Source: Diplonema japonicum (Eukaryota > Protista > Euglenozoa: Diplonemea). Taken from it: DNA of 64,000 bases. A program made the position numbers and the translations under genes. Of this stretch, positions 49,965-60,731 are shown piece after piece. The notes under the pieces are model-generated. The model did no database searches, was not told where the DNA came from, and worked only from the letters and a program-made list of their open reading frames with translations. How positions within the stretch are numbered: the first letter of the stretch is position 1; each line of letters opens with the position of its first letter. The DNA lies in NCBI GenBank assembly GCA_964019335.1, contig OZ025717.1:310001-374000 (forward strand), read 5' to 3'.

Positions 49965-50418
49965 TTCGAAAATATTTTCGGCTGAACTACTGGTCAGGGA
50001 AGATGCTGGCTTCTGGGATCGAACCCTGTTAACCATGTTTTTCAAAGGGAAAAGTGCCCAGTTGCAAAAGTTTGGCAAAAATGGCCAAAACTCAAAATGG
50101 TGACTTCCAAGGTCATTTTGGTTGGCCCCCAATATTTTTTTTTTGGAAAAATTTTTTTGGAACTTCCTTGGAACTCACCGTTCTTTCATGTTCGACATAT
50201 GGATTTTTTGAAAAAAAAAATTCAATGAACCTTTGGGCATTTTTGACATTTTTTCCCCTATGCCCCCTATAACCCCTTTGGGACATAGGGCGGGTCACTT
50301 AGCGAATATGGAGCGTAAAAAAAAAACTTTTTTTTTTTAAAAAAAAGGGGTTATAAAACTACTTTTTTTTTCTTTTTCTTTTTTTGGAGAGGTGCACGAA
50401 GTGTAAACCCCATTGTAC

Positions 50419-53400
50419 TCACTTTTTTGTGTCAATACACCCGACAAAAACGTGTTCCCCGGTGTGGTCCATTGTGTGGAAAACTCGTAATCTCGCGCTG
50501 AACACATCGCCAGACTTTGTCTCAGCCTCAATTATTACTCCATCGGGCGCTGTGACCTTGGAGTCCACCCCACCACGCGAAATGAAACTCTGAATGTAGG
50601 AATCGTGCTTCTCCGACACTTCGTCTGGCATCAATATTCTAACATTGCGGTTTTTAACATGGTCCTCCGCAAATCCGAAAAGCTGCTCAGCCGCCGTGTT
50701 GAAGTTTAAAATAACCCCTTTCCCGTTGATGGTTATCAGTGGTGATGGTGAAGCATGCCTTATGGCGTTACCAAGCTGTGCTAGCAAACTCAATTCTGTC
50801 AATTTTCTCATATCCTTAATGTACCCAACAAAAACATGGAAGGTATCTGTGATAATTTCTGATAAGGACAGTTCGACATCGAGGGTGCTTCCGTCTGACA
50901 GCATTGCGGTTACTTCTTTCGAAGTTCCAATAACACGTTTTATACCGTCTGAAAGATAACGTTGGATGTAACCATCATGGTTCACTGCCGTTTGCTCCGG
51001 CATTAGCATGTTCACATTGTTTCCAACAAGATTCGATTTTTCATGACCGAGTAAAGAACATGCTGCGATGTTAGCTGACTCAATAATCCCTGTTGTGTAG
51101 ATAACGATCATGGGGATAGCAACCAAATCATTCGACGCCGTGCTCAGCTTCTGTTCGTTTAACAAGCCTGCCTTATCAGTTGTGTCTCTTAGGTATCCCA
51201 TGAACATTTTTACATTTTGAACTTCAACTTCTCTGATGTGGATTTCCATGGCTAACATTCCACCGTCTTTTTTACGTGCGGGTTGTAAACTTACCCCATC
51301 GATGACTGTCTTCACACCTGTTTGTTTATATTTCGAAAGGTATCCATCATGCTGTTTAGCTGTCTTTTCGAACATCAACAGCTTAACATTGTTCCCAACA
51401 ATGTCGTCTGCAGAGTACCCAAAGGACCGCTCGGCTGACTTTGAAAATCGCTGGACAATGCCTACCTCGGTGATGGAAATGAAGGCCAGCGGGGAGTTTT
51501 GTACTACCTGGTTGTTGACTTCCATTGCTTTTTGCGTTTTGAACGTTTCCGTGAGATCTTTTAAGTACCCGAAATAGTTTAGCTCGCCGTCGACTGTAAC
51601 TTCTCTCAAATGTAGAACCAACGGAAATGTTTTGTCGTCCTTCCAGCCTTCTACTTGCTTTGAGGTTCCAACAACTCGTTTTACACGGGTTTTCTTGTAC
51701 CGCAGGAGGAACCCGTCATGCTTAGATCGGATGGATGGAGGTGTGATGAAATTCACGTTGGATCCTAAGGCATCTCTGGCGGGGGTGTTGAAGGTAACTT
51801 CGGCGGCTCTGTTCCACATGACGATTATGCCTTCTTGGTTTATCGAGATTATGGGCGCGTCAGCCATTTCTTTGATGGTGTTGCCCAACTGCATGTTGAT
51901 CTCCTCCTGGTACAGCATTGTGGCATCGCGGATGTTGGCTACATAGAACGATTCTTCAGGAGTGATGACCGCTTCGCGGACGGACACGTCGACCGGGACT
52001 AGTTGCCCGTTTTTACGTACTCCAGTGAGTCGCCGAGTTGAGTTTAAGATGGTTGGAACCTTTGTTTGTTTGTACCGTTTCAGGTACCCGTTGTGCTCGA
52101 CAGCAACTTCTTGTTGTTGGATTGTTTTGATGTTCTGACCCAGCATCTCTTTTTCCGTGTACCCGAACACTTCATCGCAATTCTTCCACATCGTTACAAT
52201 ACCCGCGTCTGTTATGGCGATGATCGGGGAGAACGACAGGGAAACAGTTGATTCAGCCAACGTTGCCATCGTTCGCTGTTCTATCTCCTTTTCCATGGGT
52301 CGTACAAAGGCGACGTATACGTTGCCTAAGCTGTTCTCGATCTCTTTCGGTTGCAGTTCGACAGGCTTCAAAACACCTTTTTTGTTCTTGATCTTCGTCA
52401 TGATCTTCTGGCCCAGAACCGTTTTCGTCCTTGTTTTTCTGTATTTCGCTAGATATTCGTCGTGTTTCACCGAGATGTCATCGGGCATGAATTCTCGTAT
52501 GTTTTGATTTTCCATCTCAGCTGCCGTATAGCCAAAAAGTTGCTCGCATACTGAATTCACAGCGGATATCTTACCATAAATATCCATCACTACGATGGGT
52601 TGAATGCTTCGTTGGAAGATAGCGTCTGCGACCTGCTTTGTGGAGAAATGTTTCACGTCGTCGGTGCAGTCTCTGATGTGCCCCACGAAAAGCGACACCC
52701 CGTTGGTGATCACCTCCTTAATGTGCAGCTCTGCCTGTATGATTTCACCGCCTTTCCGCATTCCTTGTGACGTGAACACTTTCCCGATCACTTTCTTAAC
52801 ACCGAGCTTGCGATACGCCCGAAGGAACCCGTCGTGCTGTGCAGCCACAGAAGGGGCCATGATGATGTTCACGTTCCTGTTGGGTGGTAAGGGCAGAGGG
52901 GGGGGATGTGCATACTTCCCGATAATTTCGTTCGAAGTGTATCCAAAGCACTTCGTCGACGCCTTGCTGAACTTGATTACGCTGCCCTTGTCGTCGATCG
53001 CCACCAATGGCGTGGCAGACAAGCTGGCAAGAGTGTCAGCTGCCATGTTTTCCGTCTCTCTTGCCACCATTGCGGTGATGTCCCGCATGAACCCTACATA
53101 CATCGGTTCCTGACAAAATAGTGTCATCCCCCTCCCCGAATCGTTGCATACCATCCCCTCGAGGTTAATTTCCTCTACCATGAGCTCGATTTGGATTGTC
53201 TTCTGCTCTTTCGTCACCATCTTCAAACGGTTCTTCTTTCCGATGACCTGTCAACAAAGTTGTAAGAATTCTTCTTATTTTTTTTAAATCTATACGTTTC
53301 CGACCCCTGTCTTTCTATAGTTCGCGAGAAGTTCATCGTGGCGAATAGCAATCTTGTCAGGCATGAGTAGCTGTAGTGTAAAGTGCGTTGTGTGGAGAAA

Positions 53401-56400
53401 CACACCTTGACGTTGTGATCCTCCAGCTCTTTGCTGCTGTACCCTGCAAGCTCTTGGAGTCTCAAGTTCGTCTCGAGAATCGTCCCGAACGAATCAATCT
53501 TGATGATAGAATCGAGGGACTCCTTGAACACCACTGCCGATAAGAACTTGTTCTTTTCAATCTCATCCACCTGAGTAAGGTCCTGAATATAACCCACGTA
53601 AGTCCTGGTGTCCTCAAAGATGATCTCCTTCACCCACAGCTCCAACGGGAAAAGTGTATCATCCTTTCTCTTTCCCTGCACCACTCTCTTGGTGTCGACG
53701 ACAGTTTTAATGCCTGTCTTCAGATACTTCGCAAGGTAAGAGTCGTGGTGCATAGCATGGTTCTTCGGCATCAACATTTTTACGTTCTTTTGAAGAACCT
53801 CCGCCTCGGAGTACCCCCACACCTCAGAGGCTGCGCGAGAGAATGTGGCAACGGTGCCTGTCTGTGACATGGTGATGATAGGATTCAAGGACATGTGACT
53901 TATGTGTGAATTGGCTATCTTCAACCAGTCCCTGGCACACTCATCTTCGATGTCGTTAATGTATGCCAAAAAGGAGCTCTTACCTGATATGGATGATACG
54001 AATTCATCGATTTTGAGTCGTACCGCGAAGAGTGACCCGTCATTACGCTTTGCGGTGGTCGCAAAAATGGTTCCAATCAGGTGTTTCACCTTCGACTTTT
54101 TGTAATTCGAAAGAAAGCCATCGTGCTTCGCAGCCACCTCCGGCGGTGTCAGCATGCTGACATTCCTCCCGATGATGCTTGCTCTGGGGTATTGGAAGGC
54201 AGACATCGCTGCCTCGTTGTAAATGCCAACAATACCCTCTTCGTCGATCTTGATAATGGGGATAGGTGCGTCTTCTACAAGCTGTACATTGGTACCGTGA
54301 ACAAGTTTCGATTCACGGTAGTCAGACAGGTCCCGCATGAATGCTACGTACACCCTTGAATTCTGTAACATCACTTCTCGAACCTCGACAGACAGGTGTA
54401 CAGGTTGCCCTGACGGCTTGTGAGCCACCACGTGTCTTGTCTGGTCAATGAATGTTCGCTTTCCTGACACAAGATACGCCTCCAAGTACCCATCGTGCAA
54501 TGGGGCAATTTCCGGCGGCATAAACATATTCACATTCTTCCCCAGAACCGATTCATGCGGGGCTTCGAAAAGTGCTTCCGCACACTTTGAATACACAAGA
54601 ACCTCACCCACCTCTGAGATGCTCACAATGGGTATAGGGCTGAGGTCCGATATCATAGTGTGCACCAAGTGCTGATATCCCTCGGCCAAGTCCGTCGTTC
54701 TGTCGCGAACGTAGCCCAGGAATAGCGAACTGGAGCCCAAGTCGTTTAACTTGATCTCCTTGATCGAGAGAACCAACGAGAAGATCTGCCCGTTCTTACG
54801 CTGTCCCTCTGCTATCCTGTCCGTGTTGATGACCTTCTTGATGCCAGACTTGATGTAAGAAGCAATGTACCCATCATGGTGCTTCGCGATTTCCTCTGGC
54901 ATCAGGATAGAGACGTTTTGTCCTGAAGCTTCTTCTTCAGTGAAGCCGAAGCACAGTTCAGCAGCTTTGTTGAATCCTGTGATGGTGGCGAGTGTATCAA
55001 CAGAGATCAGTGGGACGTTTGATGTTTGTCTGATGGCTTCGTTGAGTTTCATAGCCATTTCTAGATCCAAGGACTTGGTCAAGTCCTGAATGGTTGCAAT
55101 GTATGTGGGGTCTTCACCAGGGGGGCGGTGCTCGCGTACGGTAATCTCCAAAGGGAATCGTGTACCGTTCTTGCGGTAGCCTTCCACCCTGCGAACGGCC
55201 CCAATGACCTTTCTCACACCGGTTCTGAGATATGTCTCCAACCATGTGGAGTGATTTTCAGCGTACTCAGGCGGCATTAGCATTTTGATGTTTGCACCGA
55301 TAACTTCTGACTGCTGCCAGCCGAAAACATCTTCGCCTTTCCACGTGAAGCGGATGATGGTGCCGACATGGTCGATGGCCACGATGGGGATGTTTGAGAT
55401 TTCGTTGACGGAGTCGTTGACGAGCTCCATGAGGTCTGTGTCGCGCATCTGCCCGTTGTCAAGGAACTCTTGGATGATGGGCACCTGCACGCGGACTTCT
55501 TCAGGTATCATCTTCAGCATCAGCTTTGTGCCCTTTTCTTCATTCACAAGCTCCGATATCACAGGACGGAACACCGCAACGAGCTGCACCACAACAACCA
55601 ATATAATGAGGACCAGTCCAAGAATGAAGAACACATACCACTGCCGCACCGACGATTTTGCCTCATCGTGATAATTACTAGTCGATTGCTCCAGACCGAA
55701 GAGAACCACGTCTGTGCTCCCCCGCAGGCTGTTCAGCTGCGTCTGCAGCGCGCCAGAACTGTCCAGATCTAGCATCTCTCGTGCGGTCTCCGCCCAGTAG
55801 CTCATCGCGATGTCCACTCCCTTTGACAAAATCGCCTGTGAGCTGTACTGCTCTGCTGTCACAATGCACGATGGGACTTGAAAACTAGATCCTTCTTCAA
55901 AGAGCTCCCCTGGTTTCGTCAGTAGATTCAACGACCCGGAGGTTCTGTCCTCTCCGAAATAAAGTGTCGTTCGTATGTCCTCTAGTTTGTCTAGCTTCGT
56001 CTGCAGTTCATTCTTGGCAGCCCACTGTCCTCCAACTGTCGAGTACGCCAGTTTTGTGGCGGTAATCTGTGCCGTCGCAACAGCGTACTCACGTCCAGAA
56101 GTGTGCACTAAGGTTTTCGCCGTGTTGTTGAAATCATGCAACGAGTAGATCTGCAGGCTGAACAGCCCACAGAAAAGAGCGGCAAGAAAGCCAAGACAAA
56201 TCTGTGTTTTTGTTGAGGAGCCAGTACCTTGGCTATCGTTCTTGTTCGAAAACTGTCGGGAGGAATTTAATATAGTCAGCATTAAAAGCACCAAGTACCA
56301 GACAGCAGTGAAGAGGACTGAAGTAGTTAAGCCTAAATTGATTAATATGAGGGCCTCGTATTGTGATTTTGAAGAAGCAATCTCATCGTCGAAGAAGGCG

Positions 56401-59400
56401 ATGCGTTCGGCGAGAAGGTCGCTTATGGAATTCTTTAACTCGTATTCTGCATTTACAAAGCGGTCGTTTGTAACAGTTGCCATTGCCAATGCCTGTTGTA
56501 CATCCTTAGATAACATTGCGTCGCTGGCAGTGGTATCGTAGAACTCCCCCTCGGGGTACGCTGTCGACGTTTTCTCGTAATCTTTCTCAGCCTTGAAGTC
56601 CCACATCAATCCAGAGATTTCGTGCGTTTGCTTTGCCACGCTTGCCGCACTATCAGCCCAGAAGTGCAGCGTCATGGCGATCATGCACAATTTGTGAGAG
56701 CTCTCGAAGTTTGCTACAATGACGTCTTCCCTTTCGTGGCTGGAGTCTAATATTTTGAGGTTGTCGTACACCTTCGAGGCGTGAACAATTTTCCAGTACT
56801 TCTCATAGGCAGAGTAGCCGTGGTCAGGCTGCCATGTGATGTCCCAGGCAGCTCTCATGAGCTCTGTCGCATCTGACATGGAGTTGTTGCAGGCGTTGAT
56901 CGCAATAAGCTTATTCGCTGTGATATCGGAGGCTTCATAATACACAGTCAGTGTGATGCCTGTCACAACAAGCGAACCAACTATTAAAATACCGTGCGCA
57001 GAACCTAGAGCACGAAGGGATCGGTCTTTGAAAAGCAAAGGATTGCGTTTAGAGGCAGACACTGCTACAAAGTAGACGGCCAATGCAACACTATACGTTC
57101 CAAGCAGGATGGAAAGGTACAGGCCTGATTTATCTGCTGACTCCCTCTCGTCTGCCAGTTCTGTGGCCCTCACCACGACGTCGCGGAGAAGATTATGCAG
57201 CTCGTCGCTGAGCTCGACATCCTCCATTAGATTCAACGCCAAGGCAAGCACTTCCGTCCGGGGTTTTACTAGGTCATCAACGTTGTTCGTCAATTTTTTG
57301 TTTCTGAGAAGCATCCCTCCGACCACACTCCATGATTCGTCTTGGATATGCTTCAGAAGTGTTACAGGCGTCCCGTAGTAGCTAGCCGCCAGTCGGAGCA
57401 TGATACGCTGCTGCTTCCTGATTCGCTTGCTTATTGCGATAACATTTTCAAAGTACAGGGCTTGTTTGGGTTCTATGTTTTTATCGAGGAGCTTTTGTTT
57501 GTATTCCCGCAGTGAGCCTCGGGAGTCGGTGAGGTAATTGGTCAGGAACTGGGGTCTTCCCGTGAGCACAAAGAGCCGGGCTAAATCGGTGAGCTTTTCG
57601 TGGCTGGCACCGTACTCACGCACAATTGAGTAGGTGTCCACTTCTTCAATATACAAGTTGTAATGTTCTGAAGAGAGTGACAGCACGGACAACGCAGAGC
57701 CTGCGATGCAAAGCACAAAAAGGACGATCATAACCTGCTTCACAACTATGTCAATGTTATGGTCTATCTCTTCGTCCCCGAACTGTTCGTCGAAGTTGAT
57801 ATCTCCTAGCGAGTCGGCATGCGTTGGGTCTTGCTCTTGATCGTTGTCTGAATTCTGGCTTTCACTTTCATTCTGTTCCACTTCTGCCTTCACGTCAGCC
57901 ACTTCACCTTGATCTGCCTTCTGATCCAATTGGTTTAATTTTTGTCTTGAAATGTTCTGCAGCTTTGATATCTCCGGTTTTGGAATTAGCGTGAAGAGGT
58001 TCAACGCCTCGAGCTTTGCCTGATCGATCTCTTCGAAATTGGACACCAGCAGCACGTACAGCAGTAGAAGCACGCCCAATGCAACGGCGAGCAGCACACT
58101 GCTCCATTGGACGTACTTTGCGTACAGGTCAGTTGCTTCCTCAGCACGAAGACGGATGTTCTCGCTGAACATTTCTGAGATTCCGTCTTCGATGTTATCT
58201 GCGATCCACTCATAGGCCGACAGCACCGACGCGTCGGAGTTGTTTCCGTAAAGGCTACGCAACACAGCCAAGGTCTCGTACCCCCCCGTCCAGAAGGAAA
58301 CCGGTGAATATATCCCAGGCAGCGTGTCGTCACGGTTCGGCAACCCATCACTACCAGGCACCGTGACCTTCATGAGTGTTGTATCCCACTTAGTGTAGGC
58401 CACCAGGGGCGGGTAGTGTGACTTGTCCGATCCGACCAAAATAGACTTCTGAGCTGATTGCAAGTCTCTAGCAACGTTAATCAAGAACGCCCTCCTTGAA
58501 TTGGCAACTGCGGTGTCCGGGGTAGACATTGGTAGGGTATTGGTGTGGACTCCTGCTAAGATAATATCCCTACACCTCGGGTCCATTGTGCATAGATCCA
58601 TCACGTAGTAGCCCGCTTGTTGTGTCAAGGACCGTGCGATTCCTGAACTGTGAAGCCCCTCAACAACGGCAAGCTGGTACTGGAAGAGAAGTGTTTGGAA
58701 AGTGAAGAATGACCCAAACAATATCAGCCATATCAATAACATGAAGAGCAATGTGTACTTCAGTTTCGTCAACGATTTCTCGGACTGTGCGTTGGTGTCT
58801 GCTGCATCGTTTGCTGTTTCTTGCTTTGTCCGGCGGCTGAATTCAGACCCTTGCTCCACCTGGTCCCGCAGCCGCATGGCGCCTTCATCATCGTGCATCA
58901 CCTGCTCCAAGAAGAGCGCGTACGACATGATCACCTTATCGTCCTTCGTCACCTCCAGCACGCCGCGGAACTCTTCGTTCGCCTGTTCTCTTTTCTTCGT
59001 GATGGCGTTTGTGATGATCGACAGCTGCACGGTGTCCAGCTGCGCGGACAGTAGTTTACCCCAGAATGTGCTCATTTGAGACAATACTTCTCGATGCAGC
59101 TTTTGTGCAGATCGCCAGATTTTGACGTGCGTGTTGTCCTTCATCCCGATTGCGTTCTTGATGTAGATGGTCAGCTTGGCCGAGTGGTACTTCACGGAAA
59201 GCGAGGACTCCATCTTTCCAATGCACTGGTCGAGATACACGTGAAGGGTGTAGTTCTGAACGCGCGTTTCGGTGGAATGCCAGCACGTGAAGTAGGCAAG
59301 CTGGAGAGGGATAATATCGGAGGCAGGGTACTTCAGACTACCGCTGTGATACTGTCTCACACATTCATCAAGCATGGATGCTGGTACGGCATCATCGGTC

Positions 59401-60731
59401 CACGTCTTGTAGTGTGCAACGTAGCGAGTGGAAAGTTCGATGTCGGTGGCAGCATGCACTTGCTTGATGTACGACACGGAGAATTGGCAGCTGGCCTCAT
59501 TGGTCTCAACGTCGAACAGGTCGCTGCAGCCCTCTTCTTCCCCATACACCATCATGTCGTTCACACAGGCATCTGGGAGACCCTGGGGGCGGATTGTCGG
59601 TGTTTTTTTCGTCACGCCCGCTAGGAACTTCGTTTTCCATATCAGGTACAAAGCAGAAACCCTGTACTCCGCCATCATTGCCCCCAAACACGTTACAGCA
59701 ACACCACCGCAACCAACCAGTGTAAAATCAACTTGCAGCTCTGTGAACGCTCCACCTTGGTCTGTCAGAAAGGCAACCATCCCAACCCACGCAGCAGCAA
59801 GGTAGCTCCCTGTTTTCAACTTGTTCGAAGCTTGCTTGAAGTACGGCAGGTAGAACGCGTACACCACGCTGATGAAGAGGCAGGTGATGCTGAACCACAG
59901 CTGGAACCATCTGATCTTCCGGTTTGCGTGGAGGATGTGGTAGAGAACGACAGTGCAGAACTTCCAAAGGGTTACTACCTTGTCGGTTCTGGAGTGCGAG
60001 CGTGCGAGAGCGTGCTTGGAAAATATATCACTATCGTAGGAGAGCGTGGACATCAAGTAGCAGATGATGAAGAAGAAGATGAAGTAAATAAGAAGGATGA
60101 CCTTGAGAAACGATTTAAGCGCCCCATTACAGGCTGCGTCAGTGGCCCAGTACTGCGCATCAGGATTACAAACAGTGAGGGACATTAAAGTAGAAGCAAC
60201 AGGTATTGTCATGAAAGAAGATAAGCCATGCAGCACCATCTGGACGGCACCAAGAGAGAGTTTAGTATGAGCTTGAGAGACACCTCGGAAAGTGGAGTGT
60301 ACACCCCATAAAATGCATGGGGTGATGGCGCACACATACAGCAGGCTCAAGACAAGTGAACCAGCAAAGCCGATATCGCTGAAGGAAGAGTCCCAGAAAG
60401 GGAGGTGGGACGCGTATATTATTTTACTGATCATTTTGAGAACGCCTCCGAATGGTGCATGGGTGTTGAGAACCAAGCCAAAAAGCTGCAACACTTCGAT
60501 CACCATCCCGAGTGTGGCAAGCCGTCGGGGGAATTGTTTGTCCACCTTCAGCATCAACGGGATGATCGGCACGATTGTTGTAAAGAACGCGACCCCCGAC
60601 ACCCCTCGTCCGTTCTGTGTTTTGCTCGACCCCGTGCTGCTCGCACTTCCTACCTGCGATGCTGTAGCGGTGGACATTGAAGGTGCTCGCTGCATCTCCT
60701 TGCCCCCAGAAGCGTTACTTGCCCTTCCCAT
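50419..60731 (-). CDS. Giant TmcB/TmcC-like multi-pass membrane sensor with 13 tandem FixL-like PAS domains (~3382 aa); exons 60731-53406, 53370-53296, 53247-53152, 53109-52916, 52876-50419
   Basis: N-terminal TM bundle, helical TPR-like region, four TM-flanked loops, LNLFTLIP and MLKMIP motifs, then 13 repeats of NVxxLMP....HDxYLxxY..TG...VIG; four GT-AG introns restore the PAS alignment. Confidence 0.9.

Follow-up and report, generated by a model that had tools for sequence, protein, structure and literature searches.

Diplonemid protists possess a family of very large membrane proteins whose C-terminal part is an array of 13 PAS domains that sequence profiles assign to the heme-binding FixL/DosP class, and which carry no recognizable output domain. 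We analysed the member encoded in a 64,000-nucleotide stretch of the Diplonema japonicum genome (assembly GCA_964019335.1, contig OZ025717.1, positions 310,001 to 374,000; hereafter the window, whose numbering is used throughout), where the gene occupies 50419..60731 on the minus strand and its product joins a TmcB-type membrane part to the PAS array. We give a probability of roughly 0.55 to the reading that the protein is a multi-heme O2/NO/CO or redox sensor, which would signal through its own membrane part or through partner proteins.

FixL-type sensors, which detect O2 directly at a heme, are textbook bacterial devices that have barely been explored in eukaryotes; protists, to our knowledge, lack the hypoxia-inducible factor (HIF) pathway. 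Diplonemids occur in large numbers in meso- and bathypelagic water, few heterotrophic protists of the deep and oxygen-poor ocean match them in diversity, and one diplonemid, Diplonema papillatum, is genetically transformable. The family described here is a concrete candidate for how diplonemids perceive oxygen or NO. It also offers a first way into the biochemistry of TmcB proteins, and it poses two structural questions: why the number of domains is fixed at 13, and where the output lies.

An array of 13 FixL-type PAS domains

The first-pass annotation, made from the DNA letters alone, had proposed 13 consecutive PAS domains running to the stop codon, each with a FixL-like His motif. Both statements hold. 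A hidden Markov model (HMM) built from 11 intact repeats recognizes six domains in exon 1 of the gene, the last of which breaks off at model position 46, and another seven in exon 5, where the first does not start until position 44; this is what 13 domains would give if introns interrupt PAS6 and PAS7. The protein stops 2-4 residues beyond PAS13. All thirteen His motifs were confirmed; they recur with a period of ~124 amino acids (aa), 12 being found by pattern and the RHDEL motif of PAS6 being read in exon 2. Searches and structure predictions were run on single exons or parts of exons, never on the spliced whole, and PAS6 and PAS7 were read piecewise. Pairwise identity among the repeats is 23-34%.

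Pfam returned PAS, PAS_9 and PAS_4 many times (PF00989, E 1.4e-43 and 4e-54), and TIGR00229 matched 6 and 5 stretches. The class of the repeats emerges from searches of the PDB with the repeat profile, in which FixL is the best match (E 4.7e-33, 116.7 bits, 117 positions aligned without gaps) and DosP the next (E 1e-18, 70 bits), with the best non-heme PAS domains far behind (CTR1-like 5iu1, 5e-7, 32.6 bits; the YtvA LOV domain, 5e-6, 29.4 bits). Taken by itself, exon 5 finds the FixL heme domains 1D06 and 1DP6 with an E value of 3e-17, its motif His falling on the heme-ligating His. The top NCBIfam family is likewise the sensor protein FixL (NF041777), with 7 and 5 matches that always fall on its heme-PAS segment. 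By these profile comparisons the 13 repeats belong to the FixL/DosP heme-b PAS class, as had been supposed.

Orthology to the FixL sensor kinase as a whole was considered and rejected: HisKA and HATPase_c are missing, the matches cover profile positions ~128-240 only, and the NF041777 score of 402 bits lies far under the 850-bit equivalog cut-off because the kinase is absent. Neither Pfam nor NCBIfam detected a kinase, cyclase or other output domain anywhere in the protein, which agrees with the earlier description of an array without kinase or cyclase.

The residues of the predicted heme pocket are strongly conserved. None of the 440 domains compared, from 33 full-length relatives and this gene, lacks the proximal His, BjFixL His200 (BjFixL numbering is taken from the alignment of the repeat profile with FixL, in which the motif His is 200). 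The most conserved columns correspond to BjFixL 200, 207, 163, 187, 204, 201, 240, 191, 193, 192, 249, 251, 238 and 203, many of which presumably line the FixL heme pocket. The hydrophobic distal positions (FixL 215, 236 and 238) are kept in all repeats of the D. japonicum protein, and most of these repeats, as the translation shows, carry the D-x-T exit motif typical of signalling PAS domains.

In FixL, Arg220 contacts the bound O2. Arg at the equivalent position (His+20) is the majority residue at all 13 positions of the array family-wide. The series for PAS1-13 in this gene reads R R R F R N F I R K S K V: Arg is present in PAS1, 2, 3, 5 and 9, Lys is found in PAS10 and 12, and the residue is replaced in PAS4, 6, 7, 8, 11 and 13, the Phe of PAS4 being common to the two closest orthologues. 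Because the orthologue group of this gene keeps the Arg220 equivalent in PAS1-3, 5 and 9 and has it replaced elsewhere, the predicted hemes probably differ in ligand affinity, and a sensor with graded affinities is compatible with this position-specific loss.

One gene of five exons

The coding sequence is distributed over two large minus-strand open reading frames (ORFs), 53223..60731 (2502 aa) and 50419..53226 (935 aa), which lie in different frames. A three-frame reading of 52700-53560 joins them into a gene of 5 exons with 3,382 codons plus a stop. The exons measure 7326, 75, 96, 194 and 2455 nucleotides (nt; sum 10,146 nt = 3,382 aa), and the four introns between them (35, 48, 42 and 39 nt) each start with GT and finish with AG.

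This model follows a close orthologue. A search with the membrane part returned three homologues at 33-39% identity, one of which clusters with KAJ9468879.1 (P0004), a 3,386-aa hypothetical protein of D. papillatum. In tblastn this protein is collinear with the window from residue 4 to residue 3384. The exon boundaries fall at its residues 2446/2447, 2471/2472, 2503/2504 and 2567-2569, with exon 5 resuming from 2569 after a split codon, and the translated introns have no counterpart in it. The splice junctions are drawn from this collinearity only; the five matching sequencing runs consist of genomic contigs and contain no exon joints. In other homologues the ORF-based models P0002 and P0003 stop at the intron-1 site, after N-V/I-K, and P0001 stops at the intron-4 site. 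Since these models break off at the same sites, the intron positions appear conserved, which suggests that they are old. The full architecture is also found in proteins derived from Namystynia and Artemidia transcriptomes.

The first-pass annotation had joined the two ORFs into one protein by removing four short introns, and the GT..AG intervals together with the residue-for-residue collinearity with KAJ9468879.1 bear this out: as read from the sequence, the two ORFs are one intact five-exon gene. That they are two separate genes, or a decaying pseudogene frameshifted near 53226, is very improbable. The frame change and the stop codons between the ORFs would fit such a history, as would sequencing data that are genomic only over this stretch, but each interruption begins with GT and ends with AG, and once it is taken out the match to P0004 runs without gaps, the same sites recur as truncation points of the models of three other homologues, both flanking ORFs are otherwise intact over 10 kb, and related transcripts carry the complete architecture.

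All introns of this 10.3-kb gene are confined to 530 nt (52877-53405), within PAS6 and PAS7. Introns 3 and 4 keep the frame and contain no stop codon, and their retention would add 14 or 13 residues and leave the protein unbroken. The contigs of all four read sets finish at 50390, and a repeat lies at 50300-50389. At 53684-53744 and 54284-54313 the contigs of two read sets (X4 and X5) break and offer alternative pieces of 31-60 nt, one of which differs in a single letter, and one loose end occurs; these breaks may reflect allelic variation inside PAS5 and PAS3-4. Rfam gave no match on the whole window. The features of the gene are collected in Table 1.

Table 1 Features of the 13-PAS gene of D. 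japonicum, in window coordinates.
Feature	Position	Strand	Description
Whole gene	50419..60731	-	5 exons, stop 50419-50421; collinear with P0004 residues 4-3384
Exon 1	53406..60731	-	2,442 codons covering the membrane part, PAS1 to PAS5 and PAS6 as far as position 46
Intron 1	53371..53405	-	35 nt, GT..AG, frame-shifting; P0002 and P0003 models stop at the same site
Exon 2	53296..53370	-	25 codons; PAS6 His motif RHDEL; P0004 from 2447 (local alignment 2447-2468)
Intron 2	53248..53295	-	48 nt, GT..AG, stop codons inside
Exon 3	53152..53247	-	32 codons; P0004 from 2472 (local alignment 2472-2501)
Intron 3	53110..53151	-	42 nt, GT..AG, in frame, no stop; 14 codons without counterpart in the orthologue
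Exon 4	52916..53109	-	64 codons + 2 nt; end of PAS6, start of PAS7; P0004 2504-2567
Intron 4	52877..52915	-	39 nt, GT..AG, phase 2; older D. papillatum model P0001 ends exactly here
Exon 5	50422..52876	-	rest of PAS7, then PAS8-13
N-terminal membrane bundle	59667..60599	-	aa ~45-355, ~9-10 helices; outside loop (predicted) with near-invariant Cys188/Cys201
Cytosolic (predicted) helical TPR-like region	58812..59534	-	aa ~400-640; Pfam TPR_TmcB aa 538-627
Module A1	58044..58754	-	transmembrane helix (TM) 660, ~200-aa helical loop, predicted outside, TM878, then LNLFTLIP
Acidic low-complexity linker, predicted cytosolic	57735..58043	-	aa 897-999, between A1 and B1
Module B1	57060..57734	-	TM1000, loop, TM1206
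Module B2	56268..56999	-	TM1245, loop, TM1470
Module A2	55578..56201	-	TM1511, loop, TM1700; predicted four-helix bundle
Conserved juxtamembrane helix	55422..55577	-	carries MLKMIPEE, leads into PAS1
PAS1-PAS5 block	53547..55421	-	HMM of repeats
PAS1	55053-55421	-	His codon start 55253
PAS2	54678-55046	-	His codon start 54878
PAS3	54297-54665	-	His codon start 54497
PAS4	53925-54293	-	His codon start 54125
PAS5	53547-53915	-	His codon start 53747
PAS6 and PAS7	52639..53543	-	PAS6 split by introns 1-3, PAS7 by intron 4
PAS8-PAS13 block	50422..52632	-	HMM of repeats
PAS8	52264-52632	-	
PAS9	51895-52263	-	
PAS10	51520-51888	-	
PAS11	51151-51519	-	
PAS12	50779-51147	-	
PAS13	50422-50775	-	

A TmcB-type membrane part

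The region preceding the array belongs, by Pfam profile and by its neighbours in the ESM Atlas, to the TmcB family. TPR_TmcB (PF25474) matches residues 538-627 well above its cut-off (E 6.6e-14, 52.3-55.6 bits against a cut-off of 27). In the ESM Atlas, the clusters nearest to residues 1-660 consist of TPR_TmcB proteins (score 0.94, with 216 of 256 features shared), and other neighbours are TPR_TmcB+PAS clusters; all of these neighbours are labelled hypothetical. CHASE3/PAS proteins and one PAS-cyclase cluster are weaker leads. The kinship with TmcB/TmcC, which had been proposed from the sequence at the outset, is thus upheld by the profile.

The layout predicted earlier, with ~9 N-terminal TMs followed by four TM-flanked loops of ~200 aa, also reappears here. 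A hydropathy scan shows six strong peaks within residues 43-352, and the AlphaFold2 model of residues 1-660 (predicted local distance difference test (pLDDT) 83.5, predicted template modelling score (pTM) 0.79) contains a bundle of ~9-10 membrane helices at residues 45-355 and then the helical TPR-like region. Eight more TMs in the scan bracket four loops of 170-205 aa. In profile-profile comparison (hhalign), loop 1 is homologous to loop 4 (probability 93.9%) and loop 2 to loop 3 (98.8%), which gives the module order A-B-B-A, and directly after each A module stands an L-x-L-F-x-x-I-P or M-L-x-M-I-P motif. With the PAS array taken as cytosolic, TM parity would place the four loops and the loop with the Cys pair outside, and the TPR region inside.

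Other comparisons of this part returned little. A word-based search with residues 1-900 gave nothing, Pfam up to E 1 gave only noise on the membrane bundle and the four loops, and Foldseek against the PDB gave nothing significant for the models of residues 1-660 and 1240-1775. A VIA-wide search with residues 1-660, in which the bundle was not queried alone, gave only generic helical/TPR matches, at 520-633. The AlphaFold2 model of residues 1240-1775 (pLDDT 74.3) shows module A2 as a bundle of four helices that runs on into its TM helices. VIA places this module closest to periplasmic sensor domains of bacteria (8bsa_A, Z 13.2, root-mean-square deviation 2.5, 152 of 158 residues aligned; 4k0d_B, Z 13.2), followed by QseE, Tsr, TorS, McpN and NarQ; because these Z scores lie in the unspecific range for helical bundles, the likeness is a resemblance and not a membership.

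A family fixed at 13 domains in diplonemids

A profile search among 1.84 billion representatives returned 125,687 matches. The top matches are proteins of 3.3-3.6 kaa with exactly 13 matched stretches, and in no fewer than 33 clusters (at 50% identity) the count of full PAS domains is exactly 13. Members with complete N-termini carry a TmcB-like membrane part of ~1,750-2,000 residues that is homologous to that of this gene, and the PAS array of family members finishes at or within a few residues of the C-terminus. The named members are all diplonemids, namely D. papillatum, Artemidia motanka and Namystynia karyoxenos, the latter two being represented by full-length transcript-derived proteins. 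None of the relatives examined has an effector domain, and where extra C-terminal sequence occurs in them it is only more PAS.

The D. japonicum genome (62.5 Mb searched, 132 contigs) holds three 13-PAS genes, on contigs C70 (this gene), C10 and C5. The two paralogues (C10, 321159-331151, minus strand; C5, 801259-811558, plus strand) are ~25% identical to it in the membrane part. The C10 gene is a single open frame of 3,344 aa that stops inside PAS13, probably at an intron site, and the C5 gene is split over several frames. Two more TmcB-like genes (C49 and C4) have none or one FixL-type PAS. The array, described as amplified in the first-pass annotation, is neither a recent amplification nor a peculiarity of this gene: the count of 13 is fixed across the diplonemid family and in three genes of this genome.

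Within the orthologue group, the repeat at the same position is the most similar one in 10 of 11 cases. Identity to D. papillatum is 65-75% for PAS1-2 and 38-55% for the other repeats. Across subfamilies, best matches have the same index in 16.5% of cases, against 7.7% by chance, and the signal is clear for PAS1-2 only. As the positional signal is this weak, we propose one-to-one orthology of repeats within the orthologue group only.

Outside the diplonemids, Cyanophora (P0135, P0132) and Coelomomyces (P0141) have proteins with 3-5 FixL-like PAS domains that retain the His and lie directly after the TPR region; TmcB relatives with a few internal PAS domains in this place, mentioned in the first-pass annotation, are thus found among these sequences (P0135, P0141). 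Other eukaryotic proteins, P0094 of Mucochytrium quahogii and P0100, have 4-9 FixL-like PAS domains attached to hybrid histidine kinases with receiver domains, which means that among eukaryotes some proteins with this PAS class have a classical output and others do not.

FixL-type heme-PAS domains are already known, and PAS-bearing TmcB proteins are present in databases. A C-terminal array, fixed at 13, without an output domain and diplonemid-wide, is apparently undescribed: in the literature on diplonemid PAS or heme proteins, we found no paper describing a 13-PAS family.

Possible functions of the array

In the reading that we favour, every PAS domain would carry a single heme b on the cytosolic side. 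When O2, NO or CO binds, or when the iron changes its redox state, the beta-sheet of the domain and its D-x-T linker would be altered in the manner of FixL, and this change would propagate along the serially linked array. The signal could then leave through the juxtamembrane helix into the membrane and TPR part, or through partner proteins; these two routes remain, as the chain itself carries no kinase, cyclase or other effector. An output through the protein's own membrane part would fit the fact that the juxtamembrane helix and PAS1-2 are the most conserved; an output through partners would fit the link of the TmcB family to cAMP signalling in Dictyostelium. The four outside modules, which resemble four-helix bundles, may add an extracellular ligand input and so make the protein an integrator.

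A more far-reaching version of this proposal, which we put forward tentatively and consider clearly the less probable of the two, is that these proteins are dedicated diplonemid sensors in which 13 serially coupled FixL-type hemes of differentiated affinities form one cooperative or wide-range O2/NO/redox gauge. With no kinase or cyclase as output, the gauge would itself drive a membrane machine of the TmcB type, such as a module for gated transport or for the cAMP pathway. If true, eukaryotic gas sensing would gain a new mode, and the TmcB family its first molecular input.

Several points count against a multi-heme sensor. Heme binding is a prediction for every family member. Furthermore, 7-8 of the 13 domains in this protein lack the Arg that FixL uses to hold O2, so some of them may bind O2 poorly or have another role. 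No effector was identified in the gene or in the relatives examined, and the signalling step is pure inference. The membrane bundle, searched as part of residues 1-660, matches no solved fold, which leaves a channel or transporter role unsupported, and the VIA scores that liken module A2 to bacterial sensors can be unspecific for helical bundles up to a Z of ~13. Finally, nothing we found accounts for the count of 13.

None of the rival readings is favoured by the data. The protein could be a sensor or handler of heme itself and not of gas, its 13 pockets binding labile heme reversibly, either for a steep read-out of cytosolic heme or to store heme, or hand it over, at a station tethered to the membrane part. 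In favour of such a role are the thirteen equivalent sites, in which the His never varies, the lack of an effector domain, a membrane domain of no assigned function that could be a transporter, and the loss of the distal Arg in many domains of the orthologue group. We nevertheless think it unlikely in either form, as the pocket is FixL-type throughout, and FixL and DosP hold heme as a stable cofactor; Arg220, which concerns ligand contact and not heme affinity, is kept in nearly all 13 domains of most members, and one heme per ~125 residues on a 380-kDa membrane protein makes a poor store. We judge it about equally unlikely that the array has lost heme binding, or never had it, and serves as a rod-like scaffold or oligomerisation module, with the conserved His in another role. 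PAS domains are frequently dimerisation modules, no output domain is present, and heme binding is predicted from sequence, all of which such a scaffold would accommodate. It sits poorly with a His conserved in every one of the domains compared and with conservation concentrated in the F-alpha helix and pocket columns, and the matches to heme-PAS domains score very far above those to other PAS domains (116 against 29-33 bits); moreover, a scaffold would not have preserved thirteen pockets over so long a time, and the repeats are only ~32% mutually identical.

A wire, in which electrons hop along 13 hemes to or from the membrane, has in its favour only the number and linear order of the hemes. 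FixL-type heme is buried in a domain of ~110 residues, which would set the irons tens of angstroms apart, beyond the tunnelling limit of ~14 Å, and Pfam found no redox partner domain or membrane heme-binding motif; we regard this reading as highly improbable. Of the ideas put forward at the outset, the buffer and the heme wire have no support.

Comparison with known systems

Module A2 of the D. japonicum protein recalls bacterial four-helix-bundle sensors (NarQ/NarX, ligand-binding domains of the Tar/Tsr type, CHASE3-PAS) in that its last helix is predicted to cross the membrane and to continue through a conserved helix into PAS1. Unlike these sensors, and unlike the tri-PAS-heme protein Aer2, the D. 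japonicum protein has four such modules per chain and no effector; the modules also share no sequence similarity with the bacterial sensors, to which the structural scores link them only within the unspecific range.

Among eukaryotes, the FXL proteins of Chlamydomonas are a precedent: these FixL-type PAS proteins reportedly bind heme and O2 in vitro (Murthy et al., FEBS Lett, 2012). FXL reportedly has no defined output and far fewer PAS domains.

The closest parallel for the single repeat is rhizobial FixL (PDB codes 1DP6, 1DRM and 1D06), with whose heme domain all 13 repeats align without gaps. They share with it His200, Tyr203, Tyr207, the LMP turn at 191-193, the hydrophobic residues at 215, 236 and 238 and, in most repeats, the D-L-T exit motif, and Arg220 is kept family-wide as the majority residue. 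The D. japonicum protein differs from FixL and from E. coli DosP in having no histidine kinase, EAL or GGDEF domain, in carrying thirteen copies of the PAS domain instead of one, and in being a eukaryotic polytopic membrane protein.

For the membrane part, the parallel is TmcB/TmcC (tiny macrocysts protein B of Dictyostelium), which has the same succession of a multi-helix bundle, TPR_TmcB and TM hairpins. Functional knowledge of the family is genetic only: in Dictyostelium, tmcB has effects on macrocyst formation and size and on cAMP signalling, and hypoxia induces it at a late stage (PMC12750705, PMC8516963). The PAS-bearing TmcB relatives of Cyanophora and Coelomomyces resemble the D. japonicum protein in having FixL-like PAS domains with the His. 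Their 3-5 domains adjoin the TPR region, whereas in the diplonemid protein the array is C-terminal, follows the last TM hairpin and comprises 13.

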